A stretch of 64,000 nt of DNA from Phaeosaccion multiseriatum. Taxonomy: Eukaryota; Protista; Ochrophyta, other classes. Numbering within the stretch: the first letter of the stretch is position 1; each line of letters starts with the position of its first letter. The DNA is taken from NCBI GenBank assembly GCA_965112735.1, contig OZ218959.1, forward strand, positions 3,224,001-3,288,000. Reading direction: 5' to 3'. This document shows, piece after piece, positions 12,601 to 54,180 of this stretch. A program made the position numbers and the translations under genes. The notes under the pieces are model-generated. The model searched no databases. It was not told the DNA's origin and saw only the letters and a list, made by a program, of their open reading frames with translations.

Positions 12601-15600
12601 GTTGGGTTGGGCTGTGCTGTGAGTAGTCGACCGACCGACAATAGACACACGAGCGGCCTTGACCTTTACGCGAGCTCTTCTCTCCCCGTCCGCTGCCACC
12701 CCTCCGCCTCTTCCCTGCCATCCTCCCCTCCTTCCTTCCTTCCTTCCTTCCTTCCTTCCTTCCTTCCTTCCTTCCTTCCTTCCTTCCTTCCTTCCTTCCT
12801 TCCTTCCTTCCTTCCTTCCTTCCTTCCTTCCTTCCTTCCTTCCTTCCTCCCCTCCTTCCTTCCTTCCTTCCTTCCCCCCTCCCCCTCCCTCCCCCACAGC
12901 CCTTCACGCAGGGTCCATGCGCCGCCGCTTCGGTGCCTCGCTGAGACGCAGCAGGACAAGGAGGAGCACAGGGAGTCGATCCTCCTCCTCCTCCACGCAG
13001 AGCGATGATAGCGATACAGAAAGCGACAGTCATAGCGACTCCGACGGCGACGGCCAGCCCCAGGAGCAGCCGCAGCAGGAGGAGGAGGAGGAGGAGGAGG
13101 AGGGACCGGCTTGGAAAAGGGCATGGACAGGCGAAAGCAAAGGGAAAGGAGGAGGAGAAAGAGGAGGGAGAGGAGGAGGAGGAGGAGGAGGAGGAGGAGG
13201 AGGAGGAGGAGGAGGAGGAGGATCTCCCTCGGCAGGAGCGTCGCTTCAGGAGGTTACCCGGCGCTTCAGCTTCGACAAGAATGGCACAAAGAATGGCGAA
13301 CAACAACGCCAGCACCACCGCGACGAGCGAGTCGAGCAGGGTGGAGGAGTAGAGCATGCGGCGAAAGGACCTACACGACTCTCTCTGTTGTCCACTCCAA
13401 AGGCCCCGAGGGGGGCCGTGCTCCCGAGGGGGGGGGCTGTCGAACGGGGCGGAGGGGGCCATCCAGTCAGTCCTCCTCCTCCTCCTCCTCCTCCTCCTCC
13501 GGTAAATCCTCTCACTCCTCCTGTCAGCCCTCTGCTTGTTGCTTCCACGCCTCACGGCAAGGAAGAGAAGGAAGGGGAGGACGGCCGTATGTATAGGTTC
13601 AGAGGCGTGCCTCCTGTGGCTGAATCACCAACTGCTGCTGCTGAGGAGGAGGAGGAGGAGGATAGCACGACAAGCAGAAGGAGCAGGAGGAGGGCGGAAG
13701 GGAGCTCCACGGCGACCACATCCCCTGGAGCTTCTCATCAACACCAGTACCGACACGACCGACACAGGCAGCCAAGAACGAGAAGGGTACCTCTCTCTGT
13801 GACGAGGGTGCCTGTCTCTGTGGTGAAGGAGCCTCTCTCTGTGGCTCCTCTGACCTTTCCAGGGGCGATGAGCGGGGCGAGCGTTGGCAGGGTGGTACGC
13901 AGGGGTCGCGGCAGTGGTCGCAAGGAGTACAAGGAAGAGAGGGAGTCAAATGACGAATATCGACGGCTCCAGCGGGCCGCCCACGCTCATCTTGAGGGGC
14001 AATGGACTCGCTACAGTACAAGTGTCAGTACTGGACTGAGTCTGACACGGACACCGAGGAGTGCGACTTCGAGTCCGAGTTCGATTCCGGGTGTGCTTGC
14101 CGTGGCCAATCGTGTGGATGACATGTTGGCTGCGGCCATGGAGAGGGCGGAGAAGCTTTGGTGGAGGTGGAGAGCGTGGAGGGGATTGCTGGGGCTCAAG
14201 CAGGAGGCGAGGAGGGGGAGGGCGGCGAGAGTCATGCAACAGGTGGGAGGAGGAGGAGGAGGGGGAGGAGGAGGAGGGGGAGGAGGAGGAGGAGGAGGAG
14301 GAGGAGGAGGAGGAGGAGGAGGAGGAGGAGGAGGAGGAGGAGGAGGAGGAGGAGGAGGAGGAGGAAGAGGAAGAGGAGGAGGAGGAGGAGGAGGAGGAGG
14401 AGGGAGGAGGAGGGATAGGAGGACGAGGAGGAGGAGGAGGAGGAGGAGGAGGAGGAGGAGGAGGAGGAGGAGGAGGTTTGCTTCTTGTTGCTGGGCTTCA
14501 CTACCACACGATATCAGTCTCCTAAAAGAGTCTGACATTTGTTTGACGCTGACACTAACCACGTCCTCAATTGCGGCCTTCGTTCGCTTCTTCTTGCGCC
14601 ACTTCCTATCTGCATGGGTTGGCTGTGTGTGTGATGTGTGTTGCCTTTGCCTTTGCATTTGCGTTTGCTTCCACTTGTCTTGTCTTGCAAAAGCGGAAGG
14701 CAGGACAGGCCCTTGTGTTCTGGGGCGTGTGGGCGGCGTGCAGAAGGAGCGGCAGCGTTGTAAGGAGGGCCAAGCGAGTGAAAGGTAAGTTCAGTTGCTT
14801 GGGCATCACAAGCGAAATTGGGCATCAGAGCACTGCCCAACTTTGACAAGTTGTGACGTTTGAGGGGCAAATGTCCCAGTCTTCTTCTTGTTGTACATGT
14901 AGCACTCTTTCTGCCCCTCTTTCTTCCTCTCTTCTCTGTCTCCCTCTCCCTCCGTCTCTTTCTCTCCCTCTCTCTCTCCCTCGCCCTTCCCTCCTCCGTC
15001 TCCACCTCATTCCTTCGCCCCTCCGCCCGTCCTTGCCTCCAACCCCCCCCTCCTCCTCTCTCCTTCCTCACTCCCTCATCCCCCCAGACCGCCGCGCAAT
15101 TCTCGACCTGTGGAGGGAGGCCACCCTCATGCGGCAGCTCGATCGCACCAGCCGATCTCGAGCTCTTCGGTCCTCCTTGCCTGCCTTCCGGCGCTGGAGA
15201 GGCCGGATCGAGGCGAGGAGAGAGGCCGGCAGTCTCGTTCGGACGGCGTTGCTGAGAAGGGCTCTGAGCAGCCTTCGCTCGCTGTGCAGGTACGTACGGA
15301 GGAGTTGTGCAGCAAGTAGTAAGTCAATGGGTAGTAAGTAGTAAGTCAATGGGTTGATGAAGTGTTAGTCAATGGGTCTGTGGAGCTGTGTAGTGCATAT
15401 TAATCGAGTCTAAGGAGGGTTGACGTATACTTGCCTTCTCTGTCTGCTGACTTACTGACCGCCCTCTCTTTGCTGTCTTACTTTACTACTTCACTAACCT
15501 GCGACTAGGCGGAGACAAGACGCTCGTTTGTCGCTGAGTCGAGTATGCAGTGCCATCCGTATCTCAGACTACGAGCCGAGCCTGCTAAGGGCGTGCCTCA

Positions 15601-16212
15601 GAGCGTGGAGGGGCAAGGCGGCCGTCGACAGGGCCGCGAAGCACCAACGGCCGCACCTCTTGCTGACCCGGGGGTGGGGGAGGTGGAGGCGCCTTCACAC
15701 CGCTCGACTGCTCCAGGCGGAGAGTCGACGGGCCGCCATCGGTAAGGACGACTTAGCGTGGGGGTGAGGGTGAGGGTGAGGGTGAGGTCGAGGGTAAGGG
15801 TGAGGGTGAGGGTGGGGGCTGAGGGTCAGCGGGAGGGTATATGGGTGAGAAGGGGAAGACTGAGACTAGTTCACACAAGCAAGTATCTTCCCTCTCCTGC
15901 TGCTCTGCTCAGCGCTCGGTGAGGGTTGATGGCCATCCAATGATTTGCTTGCATCGCTTACGTGGTATCGCCTCCCCCCCCCCCCCCCCTCTCTCTCTCC
16001 CTCTCTCTCGTCTCTCTGCCGCTCTGCATCTCTCTGTGACTCTTCCTCCCCCATGCAATGTGCCATCCATCTTGTGCCATCAATAATACTCTTCATACAA
16101 CGCAGGTATGTACAGAGCGAGGCTTGCCCAGCGCTGCTTTCACGCTTGGTCGGCATGGGCTATGCTCAGAGACTCACAGAGGGACAAGTACCAACAGAGC
16201 ACCAACAGGTGA
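1..16212 (+). CDS. Sfi1-like centrin-binding repeat protein (very large, about 24 exons in window, 5' end upstream of the window)
   Basis: Phase-consistent exon chain: 1-86, 427-1131, 1363-2162, 2465-2594 (GC donor), 2941-3023, 3670-3816, 4330-4418, 4719-4923, 5374-5503, 5868-6017, 6838-7041, 7327-7386, 7724-7945, 8215-8373, 8735-9067, 9367-9443, ~9746-10566, ~10836-11062, 11284-11632, 11995-12532, ~12912-14242, 14694-14783, 15088-15289, 15509-15741, 16106-16212 (TGA). The product is Arg/Trp-rich and helical, with dozens of 'A..h....ll...f..W(r)' units (e.g. [53 protein letters not shown]) matching the Sfi1 repeat consensus. Confidence 0.7.
2790..2920 (+). repeat. 10-bp minisatellite (CCATCCCCTG)n in intron
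   Basis: Direct tandem repeat just upstream of the acceptor at 2940. Confidence 0.95.
3033..3451 (+). repeat. 23-bp minisatellite (CCCATATGCCTGTCTTGATAATG)n, about 17 copies, intronic
   Basis: Tandem array starting a few bases after the 5' donor at 3024. Confidence 0.95.
4160..4322 (+). repeat. 21-bp minisatellite (GCTGTATCACCAACTGGCTGT)n, about 8 copies, intronic
   Basis: Tandem array ending just before the acceptor at 4329. Confidence 0.95.
6180..6810 (+). repeat. (CCCT)n microsatellite, about 630 bp, intronic
   Basis: Direct inspection; source of the spurious PPSL/REGG ORFs. Confidence 0.97.
14247..14475 (+). repeat. (GGA)n microsatellite at the 5' end of an intron
   Basis: Direct inspection, follows the donor at 14243. 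Confidence 0.95.
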
Positions 16213-17937
16213 AGATGGAGGGCTGACAGAGACGAGCAGAGAATGAGAGGGGCCATCACAGAGAACGAAAGGGGGCTACGGGCCAAGTACCAACAGAGCA
16301 CCAACAGTTGAAGATGGGGCAATGGCAGACGAGAGTCCAGGGACGACTGGGGAGCCAGCACTAATCACGAGGCTCCTCACTACAATAGGGTTGTAGACAA
16401 TGAAGCGTAGACATGTCAAGGCGTCAAGGCTTTCGCAGGAGCTTTGAGCAAACAGTATAGAGATAGGCTTCGCTTGTGCGAGGCGGAAAGGAAGAATCCC
16501 ATGGCCCACACTCAATGGTGGTACGTGATTTGTGCGTCATAGTGGGTCAACGGGGGGCAAAAAGGGGTTCAAAGGCAGTCAAACGTGGTCAAAGTTAGAG
16601 TCAAGTGGCGTTAAAACAGGGCGTCAAAGCAAAGTGCCTTTCAACCGCGAAGAAATCGCACTACGGAGGTCGACTTTCGTCTCGATTTTGGTGTAAGTCG
16701 AAGGTGAGCATTCACTGATCATCTGAAAGTCGACTTAGTGATGGGGATGATCTTTTTATGTGCGAAAGTTGACCTCGACATCAGCTGGAACCCCCCAAAC
16801 CGGCCAGAAACAGCACTCGTCACAGGGTTCTGCCGGCAGAAACGGGAAACAGGAAAACACATCAAGAGTGGAGTCTGTTGCGCACGCTGTGTGGAGCACG
16901 TAGGGGTAGGGGAGGCGCCGCTTGGTTATAGGGTATGCATGGGTTATGCACTCCCACGTTCTGGGCATGTGGGCACAGAAACACAAATACACAAGATACA
17001 AAAATATGAATTTTAGTACAGTGGTCGACGGTAAAGAAGCGAAGGGTGCCACGAGACCCCGGGGGGTAGTCAGATTGTATAAGCCGGCAGGGAATGAATC
17101 ACAGTTGTCGGCATTATATCACCACCCTATTCGAGAGAACAAGAACTAATTTCGCAAAAACAAAAAAAGTAAGTGCGACAGAGGAGAGAAAAAGGCAAGA
17201 AGAAAGAGCAGCAGGAGAGAGGGAGAAGACAAAAGGTGGGTACCAAGATGTGGAAAGAAAGACGGCCTTCCGCTGGGTCGTCAATCGAAAATCGCGGGGA
17301 GAGATGCATGTCAGCAGCCAGGGGAAGATCCGAGGCCCGCGTATTTCCGCGTTCCCGCATTCTTTCCTTTGTGTCTAGGGAGAGTTGATAGGGGCTGCCT
17401 GTGCTAAAAGCAAGAGCTGCATGATCCCTCCTCATACAACTCGTCTCCCTTGGCGTTGTGACTTGAACTTGCCACACATCACTCGACTCGCTCATTCACC
17501 CCTCCAACGTTGGACCTGGTACAGTTGTACCGTCGTACGTCACCGAGAGCAAAGCCAACAGACGAGGCTCACACCAGGCCTGTGGCCAGGATGTTTCAGG
17601 TGCGGTGATTAGCACGGAAGGTAGAAAGGGGGTAAGGGGGAGGGGGGGTGAATGGCTGCCCAAGCAAGCAATGACCAGGTGGGGAGGGGCGGCGAGCGAG
17701 CATTTGGAGCTAGCGAGGGGGACAGCCATCCACGATGGCAATCTCTGAACGTTACTTGTTGCTCGCTACTCCTCCGGGAATTCTCAAGCTCCTGAAGACT
17801 CTTCCCTGCCTGGCGAGCCTGAGCCCTACTGACCTTGAATTCCCCTCCGCCCCTGCCTTCCCCTGCTGTTCCTGACTTGCCCCGCCCGCCCACTCCCTTC
17901 GTTCTATCTACCACCTCTCCGGCCCCTTGAACAATAC

Positions 17938-19736
17938 ATAAAGACATCTTGGAGGTGGGGGCTGCTGCTGGCGCTGTTGGCGCTCAGTGGAGAGCACTTT
18001 CTTCCGGTCCGAGGCCAAAAAGGTCAGTAGCAGGCTTGCTTGACAAGCTTAAATTTAAGCGAGCGAACAGGCAGGCAGCAGCGTTCCTGCGTGTTGAGCA
18101 CCGCAGTACTCAACTCCCCTCCCCTTTCTTTGAGCGAGCGGATTGGCTGAAGCAACCTTCTCACCCCCTTTTCCCAGCGCTGAGGCTGTCCCCTCTCACT
18201 TTGGTAGGAGCTGCGCAGCCTGAGGGCCACTCCCCCCCCCCCGATGCTTGCGAATCATCATTGGGCTTCTCTATTCCCTCTCTCTCACTTTTTTGGAATC
18301 CTGTCTGCCCCGCCCTTCCCCCCCCCCCCCCCCGGCCCTGCCGCCCCAACACACCATCCGGCATGCTCCTCGCAATGGTGGGCCAGGCACTCCATGTAAG
18401 TAAAGAACGAATTCGCAAGCTGCTGCTCTCTCATCCTCTCCCCTTGGCAGAAGCTGCGCACGGTCCACTTGCTCACAACCACCACCCCCTGAGCCTTCTT
18501 CTTTATTCCCTCTCTCTCCCTGATTTGGAGTTCTTTCTGCCCCGCCCTTAGCTACTATTCCCCGCCCCCCCCCCCGGCCCCGCCGCCCCAACACACCATT
18601 CGGCGTGCTCCTCGCCATCATGTGCCAGCCCCTCCATGTAAGTAAAGAACGAATTCGCAAGCTGCTGCTCTCTCATCCTCTCCCCTTAGCAGAAGCTGTG
18701 CACGGCCGGTCCTCTCGCTCACCTCCTCCTCCTCCTCCTCCTCCTCCTCCTCCTCCTCCTCCTCCTCCTCCTCCTCCTCCTCCTCCTCCTCCTCCTCCTC
18801 CTCCTCCTCCTCCTCCTCCTCCTCCTCCTCCTCCTCCTCCTCCTCCTCCTCCTCCTCCTCCTTCTCTCACCTCTTCACCTTACTTGCAATCCGTATGCCT
18901 CCACTTCCCACCTTATCCGCCCCCGCGACTTACCTGCTGGACTGCTAACGCCGCGGTTGTTCTTCCCCCCGTTCTATTATGCACCTGTGGGTGTATGTAT
19001 ACCTGCCCGCTCGGCTCGGCTGACTGGGCGGCGCTCTTCTCGGACTGTACCCGCCCTTCTCCTCGGCTGTGGTGCTTGCTAAGTGCCGGAAAAGTGAGTA
19101 TTGTGTGCTTCCTAGGGCCTCAGCCACGTAAGGCCCGCCCAATGACCTCACTTTTCCCTCCATCCTCTTCCCTTCCACGCTTTGCCTCGCTGCCGCTGCC
19201 CTGACCCTGACAGGAGCGTTGTGATCACAGTGCAACCGGACACGTTCCTCAACCTCGCAGAAGTTACCTGCTATGGCGGTGCTCTTGCGCTCATTGAGCC
19301 TCTCGCGGCGGATCTTAGCTCCGTTTATTTTTCTCCTATCTCTTTGGAGTCCTTCCCTGGCTCTCAATGCACGGACGGAGATGAAACTACTCTTTGTATC
19401 GCCGACCCCGATACAGCCGGCGCCACCCTCACCCTGGACCTTCCTGACGAAGCTATTTCCTACTGCACGGTGGTTAATCGTCCCACCGACAACCAGATTT
19501 TTCTCGATCGGATCAACGACGCGACCTTCACCATCCTCGCCGCGGACGGCACAATCGAGTATGCTGCCACCTTTCCCAACGTGGCACAACAAACCTACAC
19601 CTTTTGTACGTGCCCTCAGAAGACGAATAGAGGATGGCTGCTTTCAGCCCCTCCCTGTCCGATGTCCTCCTTCCTACCCAGCGCTCAGTCGTGTTGTCGT
19701 GTGCTCCCCCCCCCCCCCCACTCCTCCTCCTCCTCC

Positions 19737-19799
<63 letters not shown>

Positions 19800-22700
19800 A
19801 TTCTGGTGTGCTGCTCGTTCCACGGGCGGCTCACTGCTGCCTGGTGTGTTCGCTCACCCGCATGTGTGCTTCCACGGCTCGGCGGATGGCCACTGACGGC
19901 CCTGCCTTTACCACTGTGCACTCCTCTGCCCATCGTAGTTGTTGGCAAGTAAGTACCCCCTCTGTGAAACTGATGGGAATAGTACTGGAGCTCCCTATGG
20001 ACCTTCCCTTTCTTCTCATTTTATTGGGCCCCTCCTCCTGCTGCCTACGCGAGCCGCAGATGACGTCATCACTAACGCACGTTGCGATCCCCCCGTCTTG
20101 CCTGTCGCTGCCTTCCTCCTCGCCCCCCCCCCTCGCTGATCTCACCCCTTTGCCCTTGCAGACGCGTCGTGATCGAAGTCGAGCAGGGCAAGACCATCAA
20201 TCTCGCAGAAGTCGCATGTTACGATGGCAACAGTGTCAAGATTCCGCGAAGAGACATCACCTTGAGCTCCCTCTTCAGGCCCAGGTATCCTGCCTCTCTA
20301 TGCGACGACGGCAACGTCTACACCTTCTGTCACTCCGACGGAGGGGCAGCAGAACCAGGCATCCTCACTCTCTACCTTTCTGGCGGTCGTGACCAAGTCG
20401 TTGCGTACTGCGAGGTCACCAACCGCCGTAGCAGTTGCTGCAAGAACCGCATCGACGGCGCCAGCTTCAAGATCCTTGACGCGGACGACAATGAGCTGTA
20501 CTCAAGCGTCTTTGTCGGAGCAGAAAACTCCTACACCTTCGGTACGTACACGTGGCTGCCTGCGTCATGCTCCCGCGGGGTGGGAGGGGGGGGAGTAGAG
20601 GGCGATCAATACTTGTCAGCTGCCATGGTGGAGCTGCTCCTCGATCATTTCCCCACCGTAAATCTCGAAGCCCTCCCCCTCCCCCGCCCGCCCCACACAC
20701 TTACCCTTACGTGCTGCTCACGTCCTGTCCCCCCCGTTGGGCTGCTCACTGCTGCCTGCCCTGTTCGCCCGCATGTGTGCTTCCACGGGTCGGCGTATGG
20801 GCACTGACGGCCTTTGGACCATTGTGCATCCTGCTGCTCTCCTATGCCTATTGTAGATACTGGCAAGTAAGTACCCCCTCCTCTGTGAAACTCATGTGAA
20901 CAGCCAGAGCTCCTTATGAACCTTCCTTTGTTCCTCACTTCATTGGGCCCCTCCTCCTGCTGCCTACGCGAAGCGCAGATGACGTCATCACTAACGCACG
21001 TTGCGATCCCCCCGTCTTGCCTGTCGCTGCCCTTCCTCCTCGCCCCCCCCCTCGCTGATCTCACCCCTTTGCCCTTGCAGACGCGTCGTGATCGAAGTCG
21101 AGCAGGGCAAGGCCATCAATCTCGCAGAAGTCGCATGTTACGATGGCAACAGTGTCAAGATTCCGCGAAGAGACATCACCTTGAGTTCCCTCTTCAGGTT
21201 CAGGTATCCTGCCTCTCTATGCGACGACGGCAATGACGGCACCTTCTGTTACTCCGACGCAAGCGCAGCAGAACCAGGCATCCTCACTCTATACCTTTCT
21301 GGCGGTCGTGACCAAGTCGTTGCGTACTGCGAGGTCACCAACCGTAACGGTTGCTGCAAGGACCGCATCGACGGCGCCAGCTTCAAGATCCTTGACGTGG
21401 ACGACAATGAGCTGTACTCAAGCGTCTTTGTCGGAGCAGAAGACTCCTACGCCTTCTGTACGTTGGGGCGGGGAGAGGGAGATTTGTATTTCATGCTTTT
21501 GACTGCCGCTCTTCCTCTTCTCGTTTTGCTCTATTCAGCCGTCAGTCCTGTTGTCGGACGTGGAGCAATGCTGCCCCTCGCTCTCCCCACCTTCATCTGG
21601 ACTGCGTGTGTCTCAGACTCAATCTCAGCCCTGTGCCCCTCCTGCTCCGTTATCGGCGTGCCCATGGGATGCTCACTCCCCACTTGCCGGCAGCTTGCTT
21701 CTCACTTCCCTTTGTTCTCTTTTGCCGCTCCGCGCCTTTTGCCCACCTCCTTCTCCTGTCCCTACCACGACTTAAAAGACATTCCGCGGACTGTATGCGT
21801 GACGGGCGGTGGAGTCTACAACGCCTTCTCCAGTACGTGCACCTGCCCTTCTGTGAACCCTGTCAGTCCAGTTGTGTGTGGGGGACAGGCCTGCCAGGTG
21901 GGTGCGGTTGCGGCTTTCACCAGCGCTTCTCACCAAGTATTTGCTTGACTCGCCCCCATGCATTTCCCGCGCTCTTTGCCACTCCAGCCAGGCTCTCTCT
22001 ACACCAACAGCCTGCTGGCTACCTGCCACTCTTCCTCTATCCCCTTTTTCTGCCTGACCTGTTGAGAGCTGCTGCCCCCCTCCTTGGAAGAGGGACTGGA
22101 CAGTGTCAACGCCGTACCATACCAATCTCTTTTTTCCGAGGAAGTGGGCACATGACTGACTTTTGTTCCACCGCCCCACTTGACCGCGTTGCGCTGTGCT
22201 GCCTCCCTTCTTCCCTGCCACAAACCGATCACCTTCCCTCATGCCACGGTCATGACTCACCAAAACATCGGCAACGATTGGCTCGCTGGGCCGCACCACG
22301 AACGTGCCCCCTGCCTGTGCCCCCTACTACCTAACGCTCGTCCTCACGGCGGCCTGTGGTTGGCTCCCTCGCCCCCTCATTCTGCTCACGCTGCGGCTCT
22401 TCACACGACCCTTCGTATTCTCTTCTTATGGTGGCATTGCTTCTTCGACGTCACAGGGCATCACATTTGAGGTGAGTGTTAACTATCGTTCGTTCCGTCC
22501 ACCGTTTGAACTCACACGCCAGGCAGGGGCTGAGAAGTGTTTCTGAGTGTGGCCTCCGCCGCTTGTTGATTGACGTTTGAGACTCGCCTTTCATTGTATT
22601 AGGGCGGGGCGGCTGCGTTCTTTGCGACAGCGTTAGCGCCTGCCTGATCGTCGGGCCAGTTTAAGCCTGTGCCGTCGCTGTCGGCCAGGGCCCCCCTTCT

Positions 22701-25231
22701 TCCCCTCACCTGCGGCTGCTTTCATACTGATACATCATATCGACTGTGCTCACTCCGCCCCCCTCTCTCGCTTGTCCCCACCTCACAATGCTGCCCATCC
22801 TGAAGAACTGCGCTGTTGACTGCACGGGAAGCAATAGCTGCGAGGTGAGTCCGTTTTGGGATGGGGGGGTCGACGTCACGCACTCATCAACGGGAACGGG
22901 GCGCTGCACTGCTTCTCGACCCTCTCGCGCCCCCTCCTTCCACCCCACTTTCTCTCGTGCTGTGTTTTGTTCGATTGGTCTCCTCGCTGTGTGTGTGGTC
23001 ATCGTGTCTCGTGGCCTCCTTTCTGTTGGTCACTTCCGCTCCTCGCTCCTGTGCGTTTCTCGCCTCCTTGCGAGCAAGCCTTGTACTCCTGGGCCATCTC
23101 CCTGTCTCTTGGCGTGTCCGTGACAACAAAGCGAAAGTGGACGGGGCCGAATGTATTCTCCTGTTCGTCCTCTCGAAAGCGCTCTCCCAGTACTTGATTT
23201 CTTTAGTATGTGACCTCCCTCACCCCAACCGCCTTTACCTCTGCAGAATGCTATCCTGTTTGATTCCTACGCAAGTTGCGGCATCACTGCCTGCAGTAAT
23301 CTTCAGGTGTGTGTCATAAATGAGAGGGGGTGGGGGAAAGCCAAGCACAGGCCACCGCCGGCCCTGGCTGGATGTCTATGCGGCTTTTCTTATGTCCGCG
23401 ACTCTGCTGTCTCCTCCGTCGCTTTCTGTCATGCCTCGTTCCGCTGTGAACAACAGGTCGGGGACGAAACGTCATGCTGCGTGGGACTAGGGTGGTAAGT
23501 GATCGCAGCAAAGTGTCCGTCCTTTGCCTCTTGCGGCTCGGGAGGGCCGTACCAGGTGCTGGCCAAGCACTCCTCTTGACTGAGGCCCGCCCTCCCCTGC
23601 GCACTTCCTCACACTCCTCCCATTGAATCTCACCCCCCCCTCCTTTGTGCGGTCCTGCTTGTTTGCGCTCTGCCATGCCGCCTCCATGTTTCCCGTGGTG
23701 AACCCTGCCCGTGCGACTTCAATCGTGCCAAAAAGCCCCTTTCCTGCCTATCCTGCGGACCCTGGGTCCGACATTCCTGCTGATGATGTTGTTGACGGAA
23801 GGTGTCGAGGTAAGGACGAAGTGCATCGCGCGGGCGGCGTAGACCCTTTCTTGCATACTGAGCACCTCCGAGTGGTCATCGCCTCCCTCGATGCTCATTG
23901 CTTGCCTCTGTAGACTGACAATGTGCTCTATGTTTTGTCTGCTGGACCTGGCTGGGCTTCCCTTCCATCTCCCCCTCCTACCGCGGCGACATACGGTGAT
24001 GGTTGCCCTGTTGCGACAAATAGACTCTGACGACGACTTGATTCCGAACGAATACGACATGTGAGTGCCCTCAACTAAGGAGATCGTCGAGGGGGAATGA
24101 ATGAGTACTTGCGTGCGTGTGCCCCGTCGCTCTCTCTCTCTGTCTGGCTTCTCTTTGGTCTTAGCTACAGCCTCGTCAACCCCCCCCAGCCAGTCATGCT
24201 TCACTTCAAATGAAAGTGAAGGACCAATTGATGATGTTGTGTGCATGTGCCCTTGCTTAGCCTTAGCTATCTATCATGTACCGCGTACGAGATCCCTCCC
24301 TGTGCCCTTCCTTTGACCTGCCCCAGCCCCTGCTTGTAGAGGTTGTCCGTGTATGCGGGCGTACGACTCAGTTGGCTCCTTCCTGTGTGCAGCCAAATGG
24401 CCTGTCTCAGGCCTGTACCTTCCTTCTGCGGAAGACAAATTCCTTACCATGCATGTACTCCCTTCTCTCTGGCCCCTCTGCTCCTTGCGTTCCTTGCAGC
24501 TGCCCCTTCACATTCAACCCGAGCCAAGATATGTTGTGTCCATGACTGTGAAGGTGAGGAAGGGGCTGCCGTAGAAGAAAAGAACTTCAAACCGGGCGGG
24601 TGGAGGAGGTGCGAGCCTTGTCAAGGGGCGCTCCAACTAGAGCACGCAAGCTCCACTGGGGGATTAGTAGAGCTGACTGTAGTGGCACCAAAGAGGGTCG
24701 GATGTGTGATATGCATGGTTCTGGGTTAGCTCCTTCCTTTCTGAGATCTGACTCCGCACCCTTTCTCATGCACGCTCGTGGCCTCTCTTTTGCGCTTGTG
24801 CTGTGCACGCTCTTTCTTTTTTGGGCCTCTTGGCGCACCGCCAGCCCTTGGCCCCGCGGTGCAGTGTTGGCTAGCTAGATATCGACATTTGACATGCAGA
24901 CACCACACCACACCACACCACACCACACGACACCACACCACCGGCTGTAGCTAGGTAAAGTGAACATTGCTTGTGCTTGTGGGTGAGCTGCGTGGTCTGG
25001 GTGTGCCCCCCCCCCGTGCATATCTCCAATGCTGCGTGACCTGCGTGAACACCCCGCTCGCCTCTTTGCAGAGAGAGTCCACACTGACTACATCCCTCCC
25101 TCCCTCCCCTCCTTGCTTTTGCTTGCTCCTCGCAGCTGCCCGGACACACCCAACGCCCTCCAGGAGGATTTCGACGAAGACGGAGTGGCAGACCTCTGTG
25201 ACAAGTAAGGAGCGAGGTTTACAAGTGTGTG

Positions 25232-25288
<57 letters not shown>

Positions 25289-25355
25289 GTGTGTGTGCGT
25301 GTGTGTGTGCGTGTGTGTATGTGTGTGCGTGTGTGTGTGCGTGTGTGCGTGTGTG

Positions 25356-25387
<32 letters not shown>

Positions 25388-25663
25388 CGTGCGTGTGTGT
25401 GTGTATCCCCCAGCGCGCCTCTCTCTGTCTGTTCTTCGGTTTTGGCGTCGCTCGTCAGTGCCCTCGCTGCTCCACTTGAAATGAAAGCGGAGGACCATTA
25501 TTGCTGAATGCCGTGCCTTCATACCCGGCCATGGCCCACCTCGTACTCCCCCCTTCTTTGTGCTCCTGGCAGTACGGACCAGCTGGACTCAGATGATGAT
25601 AGAGTAGGAGATACATGTCAAGGTGATAGAAATCACAGGGGCCGGGCGGTGCCTGTATCGTAG
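17938..25663 (+). CDS. Secreted modular lectin-like protein: signal peptide, 3 circularly permuted F-type lectin (fucolectin/discoidin-like) domains, Cys-rich repeats, thrombospondin type-3 repeats
   Basis: Phase-consistent exons: 17938-18022 ([28 protein letters not shown], first codon ATA), 18387-18395, 18629-18637, 19084-19093, 19214-19605, 19939-19948, 20162-20541, 20857-20866, 21081-21457, 21779-21897, 22457-22471, 22806-22844, 23247-23306, 23457-23494, 23736-23809, 24024-24060 ([12 protein letters not shown]), then either 24500-24545 ([14 protein letters not shown]) or 25136-25204 ([22 protein letters not shown]) plus 25573-25663 ([15 protein letters not shown]...*). Lectin motifs: NLAEV.CY, LSS....PAS.C.DG...TFCHS, V.NR..CC..RI. 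Confidence 0.72.
18320..18705 (+). repeat. Tandem duplication (about 140 bp x2), each copy carrying a 9-nt micro-exon with its splice sites
   Basis: ~18320-18462 vs ~18563-18704 are near-identical (…ccag|xxxCTCCAT|gtaagtaaagaacgaattcgcaagctgctgc…). Confidence 0.9.
19830..21463 (+). repeat. Recent tandem duplication, period about 918 bp (intron + micro-exon + intron + lectin exon)
   Basis: ~19830-20547 vs ~20745-21463 are highly similar, including intron sequence. Confidence 0.93.
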
Positions 25664-27015
25664 CTAGCGTCGTTCATTCTCACAACCCTCCTCTCCCCCC
25701 CCTTCCTCCCATCTCCACAACACTCGGAGTAGGTCTTCCGTAACTACCCTCGCCGTGGTGGGCGGTTCTCGGAGGACTAGCGGTGGCTGGTTTATCAACA
25801 AGCGCCCTAGCTATCTCCATTCGTCCGTTCGATTCGGAATCGGACCTGGTGGGTGGTGATTCCGCCTATGAGGGGGGGCAGCTGCGGGAGTAGTTTAGTA
25901 GAAGTAGGAGAGTAGATTAGAAGGGAGAGGGGTTTGGCAATGTGTGAGACAATTAGTACATTTGTGTGTGTGACTCTGGTTTGGCGGCGTTCATCTGTTG
26001 AGTAGCTAAGGATGAATGTTGGTGACTAGTAGCGCTGTTGGTGAACCGTGTCTACGACCGTAGCTGCAAGCGCAACGCTAGGGTGGGTGATGTACTTTGT
26101 TTCGATGGGGTTGGCTGGTTGGGCTGGGTGGTTTCTTTGCTTTCATATATTTGATTTAGTAGGTTGGTAGAGCGTGTTGAGCCTTGGTTGCTGGTTGCCT
26201 CCACACAGAGTGTCGCGGCGAGGGGGGATCTGTGGTGGAGCTGGGAAGGGCTCACTTACGTAAATACCGTGTAGGGCATATATAATGTACGGTAACATAA
26301 GGGCGGGTGACGGATCTGAGGGGCCGCGGCGGGCCCCCTTCCTCACTCCTGAACCCGTTAGACCAATTGGAAAGCTTCCTTTTACACAAGGAAGCTTCCG
26401 TGGTCTCTGGGTAAGGCTAGCGCCTTTGCTCTTTCACCAGAATAGCATTATTGTTATCACTTCTCGCAACTCTCCTCCTTCTATCGGTAGTGCTCAGCTT
26501 GGGGGTTTATCTCCCCCTATCTCCAGCAAAGGGAGGTAGGTCTACCACAGCGGGTTCTCAATCGTGCTGGCCGTGTCCAGTCACTGAACCGCTGCGCAGA
26601 GAGTTGGGGGGGCATGCGTGGTTCATTGTTATTTCTGTACCTATGACGTCACGGCGCTGCTGTATGTTGTACTGCAGCCGGAATTATGGAGTGGCTGGCT
26701 GCCAATGACTGACTGGGGTGGAACATGGGACGTGGAAACAAGGAGAATTCATTCGGCAGACGTCACATCACAAGACGGTGATTCATCTCTCTAGTCGTGG
26801 GATAGTCGAAAGAGGTGGAGAGCGGTCGAAGAAGACGAGAGACAGGAGGAGAGAGAGATAGAGAAGTGAGCGATAAAGAGAGATCGACAAAGATCGAGTG
26901 AGGTCGACAGAGGTCGAGCGCGGTTGAGGGGGGTCGAGCGAGGTCGAGGGAGGTGGGGCAGTGCCCAGGCAGGGAGGGAGAGGGAGAGAGAGAGAGGGAG
27001 AAAGACATTTTTCCG

Positions 27016-46406: not shown

Positions 46407-54180
<7,774 letters not shown>

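Follow-up and report, generated by a model that had tools for sequence, protein, structure and literature searches.

Whether a run of repeated exons in an algal genome encodes a working recognition protein, and whether its binding surface has been diversified by selection, is the question raised by a locus of Phaeosaccion multiseriatum (Ochrophyta). The stretch analyzed, hereafter called the window, comprises 64,000 nucleotides (nt) of assembly GCA_965112735.1 (contig OZ218959.1, positions 3,224,001 to 3,288,000 of the forward strand); it has a guanine-plus-cytosine content of ∼58%, is rich in microsatellites, and sits on contig 10 of an assembly that has 22 contigs and totals 67 Mb. A sequence-only reading of the window had described three cassettes, each made of a micro-exon, an intron, and one large exon encoding an F-type-lectin domain, and had proposed that they form a recognition protein diversified at its sugar-binding loops. 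F-type lectins serve as a recognition module in fish immunity, oyster fertilization, and streptococcal toxins. Our analysis suggests that the locus is probably an intact multi-exon gene for an array of circularly permuted F-type-lectin-like modules joined by micro-exon linkers, belonging to a family marked by cassette turnover and gene conversion, with a constrained domain scaffold. Among the earlier observations, the exons, their phases, and the counts of changes stood, and the near-identity of the introns and the recency of the duplication did not; as for the interpretation, lectin identity, loop clustering, and cassette evolution were supported, and adaptive diversification was not.

The six cassette exons are as follows (positions are those of the window).

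19084-19093, + strand: micro-exon 1, 10 nt (TGCCGGAAAA), with an AG acceptor and a GTGAGT donor; it gives the linker V-P-E-K and is required by the frame.
19214-19605, + strand: domain exon 1, 392 nt, an open frame with GT-AG borders; a divergent alpha-type domain with Ile in place of His, no Cys-Cys, and both Arg residues.
19939-19948, + strand: micro-exon 2, 10 nt (TTGTTGGCAA), with AG and GTAAGT borders; it gives the linker F-V-G-K, and both its GGCAA end and its placement ∼213 to 227 nt upstream of the domain exon are conserved in paralogues.
20162-20541, + strand: domain exon 2, 380 nt, with His57, Arg88/89, Cys92-Cys93, and Arg96, and with Ser at the position of the motif Asp.
20857-20866, + strand: micro-exon 3, 10 nt (ATACTGGCAA), with AG and GTAAGT borders; it gives the linker D-T-G-K, and the unit is conserved in paralogues.
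21081-21457, + strand: domain exon 3, 377 nt, with Tyr in place of His and with Cys-Cys and both Arg residues present.

The splice borders and reading frames bore out this three-cassette structure. All six exons are bounded by AG acceptors and GT donors (GTAAGT, GTGAGT, or GTACGT), and the cassettes measure 402, 390, and 387 nt, all multiples of 3, entering and leaving in phase 1; hence, the skipping of a cassette would preserve the frame. Because direct joining of one large exon to the next would give 1 + 1 nt, the micro-exons are needed for the reading frame, and each supplies the middle of a four-residue linker whose last residue is Lys. Moreover, an AG-N10-GTAAG unit with the GGCAA end was found ∼200 to 227 nt upstream of 11 of the 18 paralogous domain exons, and one paralogue carries a 13-nt version, 3 nt longer, that keeps the frame. 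We infer from these sequence features that the micro-exons are spliced as modelled. Domain exons 2 and 3 share 89 to 90% protein identity (tblastn E value of 7e-71), while domain exons 1 and 2 share 38% (3e-16); domain 3 is one residue shorter than domain 2 in the Arg-Cys-Cys-Arg loop, which matches complementarity-determining region 4 (CDR4) of the lectins.

The relationship of the domains to F-type lectins, claimed by the sequence-only reading, was supported by both family profiles and structure matches. The three domains do not reach the gathering thresholds of PF22633 (F5_F8_type_C_2) or PF00754 (F5_F8_type_C), and PF22633 matched 7 of 19 paralogue exons weakly, with a best E value of 0.003. 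A single-sequence search of the PDB returned noise only, and a word-index protein search with domain 2, covering proteins of 70 to 220 amino acids, gave no match. An exhaustive protein search retrieved 237 cluster representatives at E ≤ 1e-3, the closest with ∼44% identity, and the top homologues pass the thresholds of both Pfam families. Named homologues include proteins of the chrysophyte Ochromonas (MMETSP transcriptome), which is the nearest named sequence relative found, and of the dinoflagellate Alexandrium, as well as a fish F-lectin. For domain exon 2 (126 residues, 54-sequence alignment), AlphaFold predicted a compact beta-sandwich with a mean predicted local distance difference test (pLDDT) score of 96.2 and a predicted template-modelling (TM) score of 0.90; with a shallower alignment of 19 paralogues, the pLDDT was 76. 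When this model was compared with 48,161 PDB representatives by VIA-align, all 50 matches listed had the galactose-binding-domain-like fold, the best being the fucose module SpX-3 of S. pneumoniae (2J22; Z of 10.1, root-mean-square deviation [rmsd] of 1.7 Å over 97 residues). Eel agglutinin AAA (1K12; Z of 9.2) showed 27% identity, the highest among the matches listed, and FBP32 (3CQO) reached a Z of 9.2 and CBM32 modules 9.0 to 9.3. Searching the PDB with the family profile (54 sequences) gave FBP32 at 7.9e-21, AAA at 4.1e-12, lectinolysin at 2.7e-9, and SpX at 5.8e-8; the five best-scoring distinct sequences, and six of the best eight, were F-type lectins (7.9e-21 to 2.7e-7), with CBM32 modules interleaving from ∼1.4e-7. 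It is thus well supported, on profiles and a predicted structure, that each large exon encodes one whole F-type-lectin-like beta-sandwich domain.

The order of the strands within this domain is unusual. All structural matches align residues 22 to 126 of the model with the first three-quarters of the target, leaving the first two strands of the model over; in the case of AAA, the alignment covers residues 2 to 122 of 158. Consistently, single-domain lectins were matched noncollinearly by the profile, positions 30 to 121 corresponding to chain residues 11 to 106 and positions 10 to 29, the "i-N-L-a-E-V-e-l-y" strand, to chain residues 130 to 149, the last strand of the lectin. In the tandem lectin FBP32, the profile alignment crosses from the end of domain 1 directly into domain 2. 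Because of these split profile and structural alignments, each exon would be composed of the last two canonical strands, a linker, and the first three-quarters of the fold. In the canonical order the closing strands ("L-T-L-C-E-V-E-V") are C-terminal, while here they are N-terminal in each exon unit. The "LNLAEVxCY" strand occurs at the starts of domain exons only (in the window and 11 sampled paralogue regions, single-cassette loci included), and a closing exon carrying the last two strands after the array, which would restore the canonical order, was sought in the same regions and rejected, none being found. The first 20 residues of the model have pLDDT values of 97 to 98. In the F-type fold, the N and C termini leave the bottom of the barrel next to each other (PMC5712786), which makes a permutation geometrically easy. 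We therefore conclude from the model and the alignments that the predicted domain is circularly permuted and that exon equals domain; since the strand order is permuted, exon and domain boundaries coincide.

This arrangement appears to extend beyond the alga. Among 83 classifiable database homologues, the strand pair comes first and the core last in 73, while 10 have the canonical order, and in a complete-looking homologue of five units the strands stand directly after the signal peptide and the protein ends after the core. In a shape search of the Atlas, residues 1 to 126 aligned with PF22633-bearing clusters at TM scores of 0.84 to 0.87 (by an aligner that may not be sequential), with matches from giant viruses, Planctomycetota, and Verrucomicrobiota. 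Judging from sequence order and the shape search, the permuted form appears to occur widely, in protists and giant viruses as well as in some bacteria. Viral F-type lectin domains have been described as lacking a C-terminal strand (PMC5712786). No description of circular permutation in an F-type lectin or discoidin domain was found in the limited collection of literature searched, and the review PMC5712786 makes no mention of a permuted strand order.

Next to the fold, the residues of the predicted sugar pocket link the domains to F-type lectins. AAA binds fucose via His52, Arg79, and Arg86, with the vicinal Cys82-Cys83 disulfide stacking on the sugar and Asp81 bridging Arg79, and five top-face loops (CDR1 to CDR5) set the fine specificity; the F-type motifs are H-X24-R-X-D-X4-(R/K) and the structural-cation motif h2-D-G-x, and Cys-Cys is lacking in some canonical domains, such as the C-domain of FBP32 (PMC5712786). 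The earlier assignment of the His and the two Arg around the Cys-Cys pair to a fucose pocket was supported, as the His falls on the FBP32 His in the profile alignment, and the two Arg and the Cys-Cys correspond to Arg79, Arg86, and Cys82-Cys83 of AAA in the motif alignment. The family consensus N-R-x-D-C-C-x-D-R equals the lectin motif R-x-D-C-C-x-x-R; considering this motif together with the E values, the family stands closer to F-type lectins than to CBM32. Among 40 homologues from other organisms, the pocket residues are the most conserved positions, with the His in 34, each of the two Arg in 38, the Asp at Arg+2 in 25, the two Cys in 28 and 30, and the Asp and Gly of the D-G motif in 38 and 36, respectively. 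In the gene, D-G-N follows the predicted helix 44-48, with C-D rather than small hydrophobic residues preceding it.

As the sequence-only reading had noted, only domain 2 keeps the His and thus the full triad (His57, Arg88, Arg96), whereas domains 1 and 3 have Ile and Tyr, respectively, in its place, and the vicinal Cys-Cys is present in domains 2 and 3 and absent from domain 1. The sequence H-X24-R-X-D-X4-(R/K) does not occur in domains 2 and 3, which lack the Asp: domain 2 has Ser for the motif Asp plus one extra residue, and domain 3 has Gly/Asn in the Asp region (N-R-N-G-C-C-K-D-R). The His-to-Arg spacing is 30 residues, compared with the 26 counted in FBP32. The Tyr of domain 3 is the derived state, since its codon context is unique and the His context is common to seven other cassettes; in the family as a whole, the conserved His has been replaced independently in four cassettes. 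Read from sequence, there are three pocket make-ups in the gene, namely Ile/Arg/Arg without Cys-Cys, His/Arg/Arg with Cys-Cys, and Tyr/Arg/Arg with Cys-Cys. Module 2 may bind fucose or a similar axial-hydroxyl sugar, and modules 1 and 3 would bind something else or nothing.

The gene is one member of a paralogous family with 26 matches at ∼12 loci, each with one to three cassettes. A tree of 18 cassettes resolved four types, with bootstrap values of 98 to 100 for beta, gamma, and delta. The delta type comprises cassettes 2 and 3 of the gene (A2 and A3) and both cassettes (B1 and B2) of its closest paralogous locus on contig 3, while domain exon 1 (A1) groups with the paralogue cassettes G2 and J1; this alpha type, without Cys-Cys, is not a supported clade, J1 falling outside A1 and G2. 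The locus orders are alpha-delta-delta (the gene under study), delta-delta, gamma-alpha, alpha-beta (with a frameshift), and gamma-beta (three loci), and single-cassette loci have gamma alone (two) or beta alone (two). These differences in number and order among the ∼12 loci show that the family evolves by cassette gain, loss, and re-ordering, in line with the earlier proposal of diversification by cassette duplication. Recombination or conversion and a variable repeat number are likewise seen, between paralogues rather than alleles (the delta-locus mosaic and B2, whose C-terminal third resembles other cassette types). Judging from these sequences, the gene family is a young one.

Some members are broken. 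The second cassette of locus J (contig 3, 5229655-5230015) was matched in two overlapping frames, implying a frameshift, and is probably pseudogenized. On contig 2, 1626760-1627400 holds a scrambled relic of five to six ∼70-nt lectin-exon fragments (residues 62-88) on both strands, adjoining one partial exon, which looks like a broken family member.

The introns between the cassettes bear on the age of the duplication.

19606-19938, + strand: intron from domain exon 1 to micro-exon 2, containing a (TCA)21 microsatellite at 19737-19799.
19949-20161, + strand: intron from micro-exon 2 to domain exon 2, with 89% identity to 20867-21080.

Cassettes 2 and 3 had been taken for recent duplicates with near-identical introns. 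The second intron and its counterpart differ at 23 of 211 aligned bases (Jukes-Cantor distance of 0.118), with ∼95% identity over the 3' 130 nt and ∼79% over the 5' 80 nt, and the first is alignable with its counterpart 20542-20856 across the last ∼120 to 130 nt only; thus, near-identity holds for neither pair. The near-identical 3' half of the second intron, which runs on into the exon, is probably a gene-conversion tract. In a four-way comparison of cassettes 2 and 3 with B1 and B2 (75 to 79% identical), 22 exon sites were locus specific, the cassettes within a locus agreeing with each other and differing from the other locus. Seven sites showed the opposite pattern (cassette 2 like B1, cassette 3 like B2), six of them within the 3' portion of the upstream intron or the 5' portion of the intron that follows the micro-exon. 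Because of this site pattern, a duplication before the split of the loci, followed by within-locus conversion of the intron 3' half and the exon, is indicated; this suggests that the tandem copies arose before the two delta loci separated, that conversion has homogenized each locus, and that the recency of the duplication is doubtful. Templated micro-conversion from paralogues was considered as a source of the variant loop patches and rejected, no exact donor for the main patches being present among the sampled paralogues. Pure microsatellites stand in the introns just upstream of cassettes 1 and 2, namely, (CCT)48 at 18722-18866 and the (TCA)21 run given above.

Codon alignment of domains 2 and 3 reproduced the earlier counts, with 13 amino acid changes (T11A, P40F, V52D, Y53G, H57Y, G60A, G61S, S90N, S91G, N95D, A107V, N122D, and T125A) and one codon indel against 3.5 to 4.5 synonymous differences, and the changes clustered where they had been placed. 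Faces of the domain were assigned from the DSSP string of the model, the alternating up-down barrel topology, and published CDR loop positions, giving top-face segments 7-12, 37-46, 51-65, 88-96, and 117-122 in domain-2 numbering, which together hold 45 of the 126 residues. These loops contain 11 of the 13 substitutions as well as the indel (binomial P of 4e-4, the class having been drawn after the differences were seen). Nonsynonymous differences amounted to 13.5 per 105 sites in the top-face loops versus 2 per 184 elsewhere (odds ratio of 14, P of 2e-5), in agreement with the earlier statement that the changes concentrate in the loops ringing the predicted pocket. The rates for this pair did not establish the proposed adaptive diversification, for which dN/dS above the neutral or intron rate had been the earlier criterion. 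By the Nei-Gojobori method, dN was 0.056 and dS 0.042 to 0.055 (omega of 1.0 to 1.3, P of 0.3 to 1.0), with omega of 1.6 for the loops and 0.30 for the scaffold, and the loop nonsynonymous rate (0.129) is matched by the adjacent intron, with a divergence of 0.128.

Family-wide figures were taken from eight independent sister pairs, and the intron comparison from six recent pairs. Over the eight pairs, scaffold omega was 0.36 to 0.39, significantly below 1 (P of ∼5e-6), so the cassettes are functional genes, while loop omega was 1.0, or 1.48 without one saturated, deep pair (P of 0.27). In the six recent pairs, nonsynonymous differences per site (pN) were 0.074 in the loops versus 0.049 in introns (1.5-fold, P of 0.027, with post hoc classes) and 0.024 in the scaffold (P of 0.001). 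The loops thus appear to change roughly as fast as neutral sequence, or perhaps slightly faster.

The reading that we prefer is as follows. The N-terminal part of the protein would consist of three lectin modules, each on one phase-1/phase-1 exon preceded by a 10-nt micro-exon that contributes an x-x-G-K linker. In each module the closing strands ("V-V-I-E-V ... L-N-L-A-E-V-x-C-Y") would come first and the sugar-binding three-quarters next, with the DG cation motif, C-H, and N-R-x-x-C-C-x-x-R. The family would evolve by cassette duplication, loss, and re-ordering and by conversion between neighboring cassettes, the scaffold being kept by purifying selection and the pocket loops changing at the neutral rate or slightly above; because loops change in this way while cassettes turn over, three different pocket make-ups would have arisen in one gene.

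Within this frame, two explanations of the loop changes have to be weighed. One is relaxed constraint or partial decay, in which one working pocket per gene suffices and domains 1 and 3 drift toward nonbinding spacers. This is quite possible, if short of an even chance: the loops change at a rate that does not differ detectably from the synonymous and intron rates, His has given way to Tyr at a position 85% conserved family-wide, both two-cassette delta loci keep one His (A2 His and A3 Tyr; B1 Ser and B2 His), and the changed positions tend to fall in variable columns of the wider family (entropy of 2.59 versus 2.22, P of 0.054). However, the scaffold of all cassettes, 1 and 3 included, is open and constrained (omega of 0.3 to 0.4), domain 3 retains both Arg and the Cys-Cys pair, and the slight excess of the family loop rate over the intron rate is not expected under pure neutrality with some constrained sites.

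The other explanation, which we regard as slightly less likely still, is positive selection on the pocket loops for new glycan specificities (of prey, pathogen, mate, or self-surface), as in oyster bindin. It would account for the concentration of nonsynonymous changes in the pocket loops, for the many multinucleotide changes in adjacent codons without a paralogue donor, for the lineage of domain 2, in which eight of eight unique exon changes are nonsynonymous, for the loop excess over introns in the recent pairs and the loop omega of 1.48 without the deep pair, and for the independent losses of the conserved His in four cassettes. Nevertheless, neither the whole-exon dN/dS of domains 2 and 3 nor the family loop omega is significantly above 1, the loop and intron rates of domains 2 and 3 coincide, the classes are post hoc, and gene conversion blurs all neutral benchmarks. 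The adaptive claim for the pocket loops is therefore not yet supported. A bolder extension, which we consider improbable, is a combinatorial recognition system in which permuted-lectin cassettes are included, skipped, or exchanged among the ∼12 loci, either in RNA or through frequent conversion, with the loops under diversifying selection for changing glycans.

Beyond the cassettes, the rest of the gene was traced by direct reading, translation, and comparison with the paralogues.

17949-18022, + strand: candidate upstream exon encoding a hydrophobic stretch that resembles a signal peptide, ending in phase 1 before GTCAGT (direct reading and translation).
21779-21897, + strand: probable next exon, 119 nt, entered in phase 1; a 39-residue Cys-rich module with an acceptor conserved in paralogues.
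21586-23745, + strand: shared downstream segment with 76 to 83% identity to other family loci, containing small Cys-rich exons and introns and ending sharply at 23746.
∼24024-24060, 25136-25204, and 25573-25622, + strand: candidate thrombospondin type 3 (TSP3)-like calcium-binding repeat exons, recognized by direct reading of D-x-D-x-D-G-x-x-D-x-C patterns.

The candidate upstream exon is phase compatible with micro-exon 1, is weak, and is not conserved in paralogues. Between the two, at 18180-18660, a unit of ∼240 nt is directly repeated, both copies ending in CTCCAT followed by GTAAGTAAAGAACGAATTCGCAAG, with a downstream CAG acceptor; these repeats may hold further small exons. Downstream, the frame runs on from domain exon 3 into 21779-21897 in phase 1, and the Cys-rich module encoded there had no Pfam match. 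The intron before it (21586-21778) is 86 to 97% conserved among seven paralogues, while the exon is more variable, with amino acid-changing differences, the reverse of the usual pattern; an Rfam search of 17000-27000, this conserved intron included, found nothing. The shared segment of ∼2.1 kb has 13 copies genome-wide, 10 beside lectin matches at family loci, 2 without a lectin exon, and 1 unexamined. Since there are only 13 copies and 10 are at family loci, a transposon was rejected, and the segment is regarded as part of the gene. The two copies without a detectable lectin exon (contig 16, 1872711-1874188; contig 14, 749243-751421) are either members that lost their cassettes or a sign that the segment serves other genes too. 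A strict scan for conserved splice sites downstream yielded just two further candidate exons. The TSP3-like exons at 24024-25622, one of which matched Pfam TSP_3 below threshold (25137-25205, E value of 0.005), are possibly the 3' part of the lectin gene, and a 180-nt (GT)n run (25225-25404) occupies an intron between them. Homologous proteins, when compared with the window outside the lectin exons, shared nothing with it except an unrelated low-complexity match near 51000. On the other side, a separate + strand gene with Arg/Leu-rich coding exons (15090-16210) ends near 16200, and ∼1.7 kb of purine-rich, apparently noncoding DNA lies between it and the lectin gene. From these exons we infer that the protein is extracellular and multivalent, with Cys-rich and candidate thrombospondin-3-like exons following the lectin modules.

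Several points weigh against this reading of the gene. Exons of 10 nt are extreme, and their support consists of frame logic and paralogue conservation. The only sequencing runs found were four from one sample, in which 79 to 84% of the words were present, introns included; as their depth is even across introns and intergenic DNA, with no spliced joints, all four are DNA. No in-frame ATG was seen for the candidate exon 17949-18022, and most downstream exons are candidates only. None of the three domains matches a Pfam model at E ≤ 1 by itself, and Foldseek found nothing significant in the PDB with either model, including that with a pLDDT of 96; the permuted strand order may defeat its sequential 3Di alignment. 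The single-exon model is compatible with a self-contained permuted domain and with a strand-swapped chain. The top-loop class derives post hoc from fold topology and the lectin literature. Fucose binding is not assured, given that domains 2 and 3 lack the motif Asp and that 30 residues is the spacing from His to Arg.

Some of these points would fit a wrong gene model or a silent pseudogene array, in which the micro-exons are chance AG...GT pairs and the frames are relics of a dead family. The runs are DNA only, a start codon was not found, and at least two family loci are broken (the frameshifted cassette of locus J on contig 3 and the scrambled fragments on contig 2). This is nevertheless very unlikely, given three open exons with canonical splice sites, a micro-exon unit conserved across loci in sequence, position, and length modulo 3, and significant purifying selection on the scaffold. 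An assembly artefact, in which two haplotypes or collapsed paralogues were wrongly joined to give cassettes 2 and 3, is scarcely credible: although no single short-read contig covers both cassettes and the four runs come from one sample that is probably the source of the assembly, the junction-specific intron piece 20759-20976 has single-copy depth in all four DNA runs (72.9 versus 77 in the flank in run X1 and close to flank depth in X2 to X4), which argues against a mis-join, the flanks of the two copies differ, and the paralogous locus on contig 3 has a like two-cassette arrangement with matching intron signatures. The cassettes are almost certainly tandem copies, and the haplotype mis-assembly that the sequence-only reading had named as a way to refute it is argued against.

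Compared with known systems, the domains resemble the solved F-type lectins AAA (1K12), FBP32 (3CQO), SpX-3 and fucolectin-related modules (2J22, 2J1R), and S. mitis lectinolysin (3LE0), which have a like beta-jellyroll (rmsd of 1.7 to 2.2 Å) and share with them the His, N-R, the vicinal C-C, the second Arg, and the DG cation motif (profile E values of 8e-21 to 3e-7). In contrast to these lectins, the algal domain is permuted, has C-H instead of C-x-H, a shorter CDR2-equivalent loop (from the DG motif to the His), and a G-G insertion (hence 30 residues from His to Arg), and lacks the motif Asp in domains 2 and 3. The CBM32 and NedA-like galactose-binding domains (PF22633, PF00754) share the superfold, with Z of 8 to 9.3. 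Tandem arrays of nonidentical F-type domains are known, FBP32 being an example (PMC5712786). F-type lectin domains have been reported from diatoms, brown algae, cryptomonads, green algae, Phytophthora, and algal giant viruses (Bishnoi et al. 2015, as relayed in PMC5712786), and in that relayed account those of protists occur, like the algal gene, as single or tandem domains joined to other modules.

The sequence-only reading had likened the gene to the exon-shuffled LRR-ROCO genes of brown algae; oyster sperm bindin is closer, given the shared lectin-repeat architecture and pocket-centered variation. In Crassostrea gigas, bindin carries between one and five F-lectin repeats in tandem, their number varied by alternative splicing; eight pocket sites are under positive selection, some repeats have lost the triad, the introns recombine, and those beside the repeat exons hold microsatellites (PMC5712786). 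The algal gene resembles it in tandem repeats, pocket-face variation, triad loss, intronic microsatellites, intron recombination, and variable repeat number. Unlike in the algal gene, however, an intron splits each bindin repeat, and selection and splicing were demonstrated from complementary DNA and population data; the algal gene has one exon and a micro-exon linker per repeat, and its variation lies between paralogous loci of one genome.

F-type lectins in stramenopile algae were already known; what is new here is a natural circular permutation, linker micro-exons of 10 nt, and a readable young family. If the combinatorial system considered above were true, it would be the algal equivalent of oyster bindin, based on an undescribed permutation of the F-type lectin, with mates, prey, pathogens, or the alga's own fucose-bearing surface as its targets. 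Through the permutation, a single symmetric exon carries the entire lectin domain, an ideal unit for exon shuffling. The young family is a tractable system for asking whether lectin pocket loops change adaptively in a unicellular alga, one in which cassette turnover and conversion are readable from DNA.

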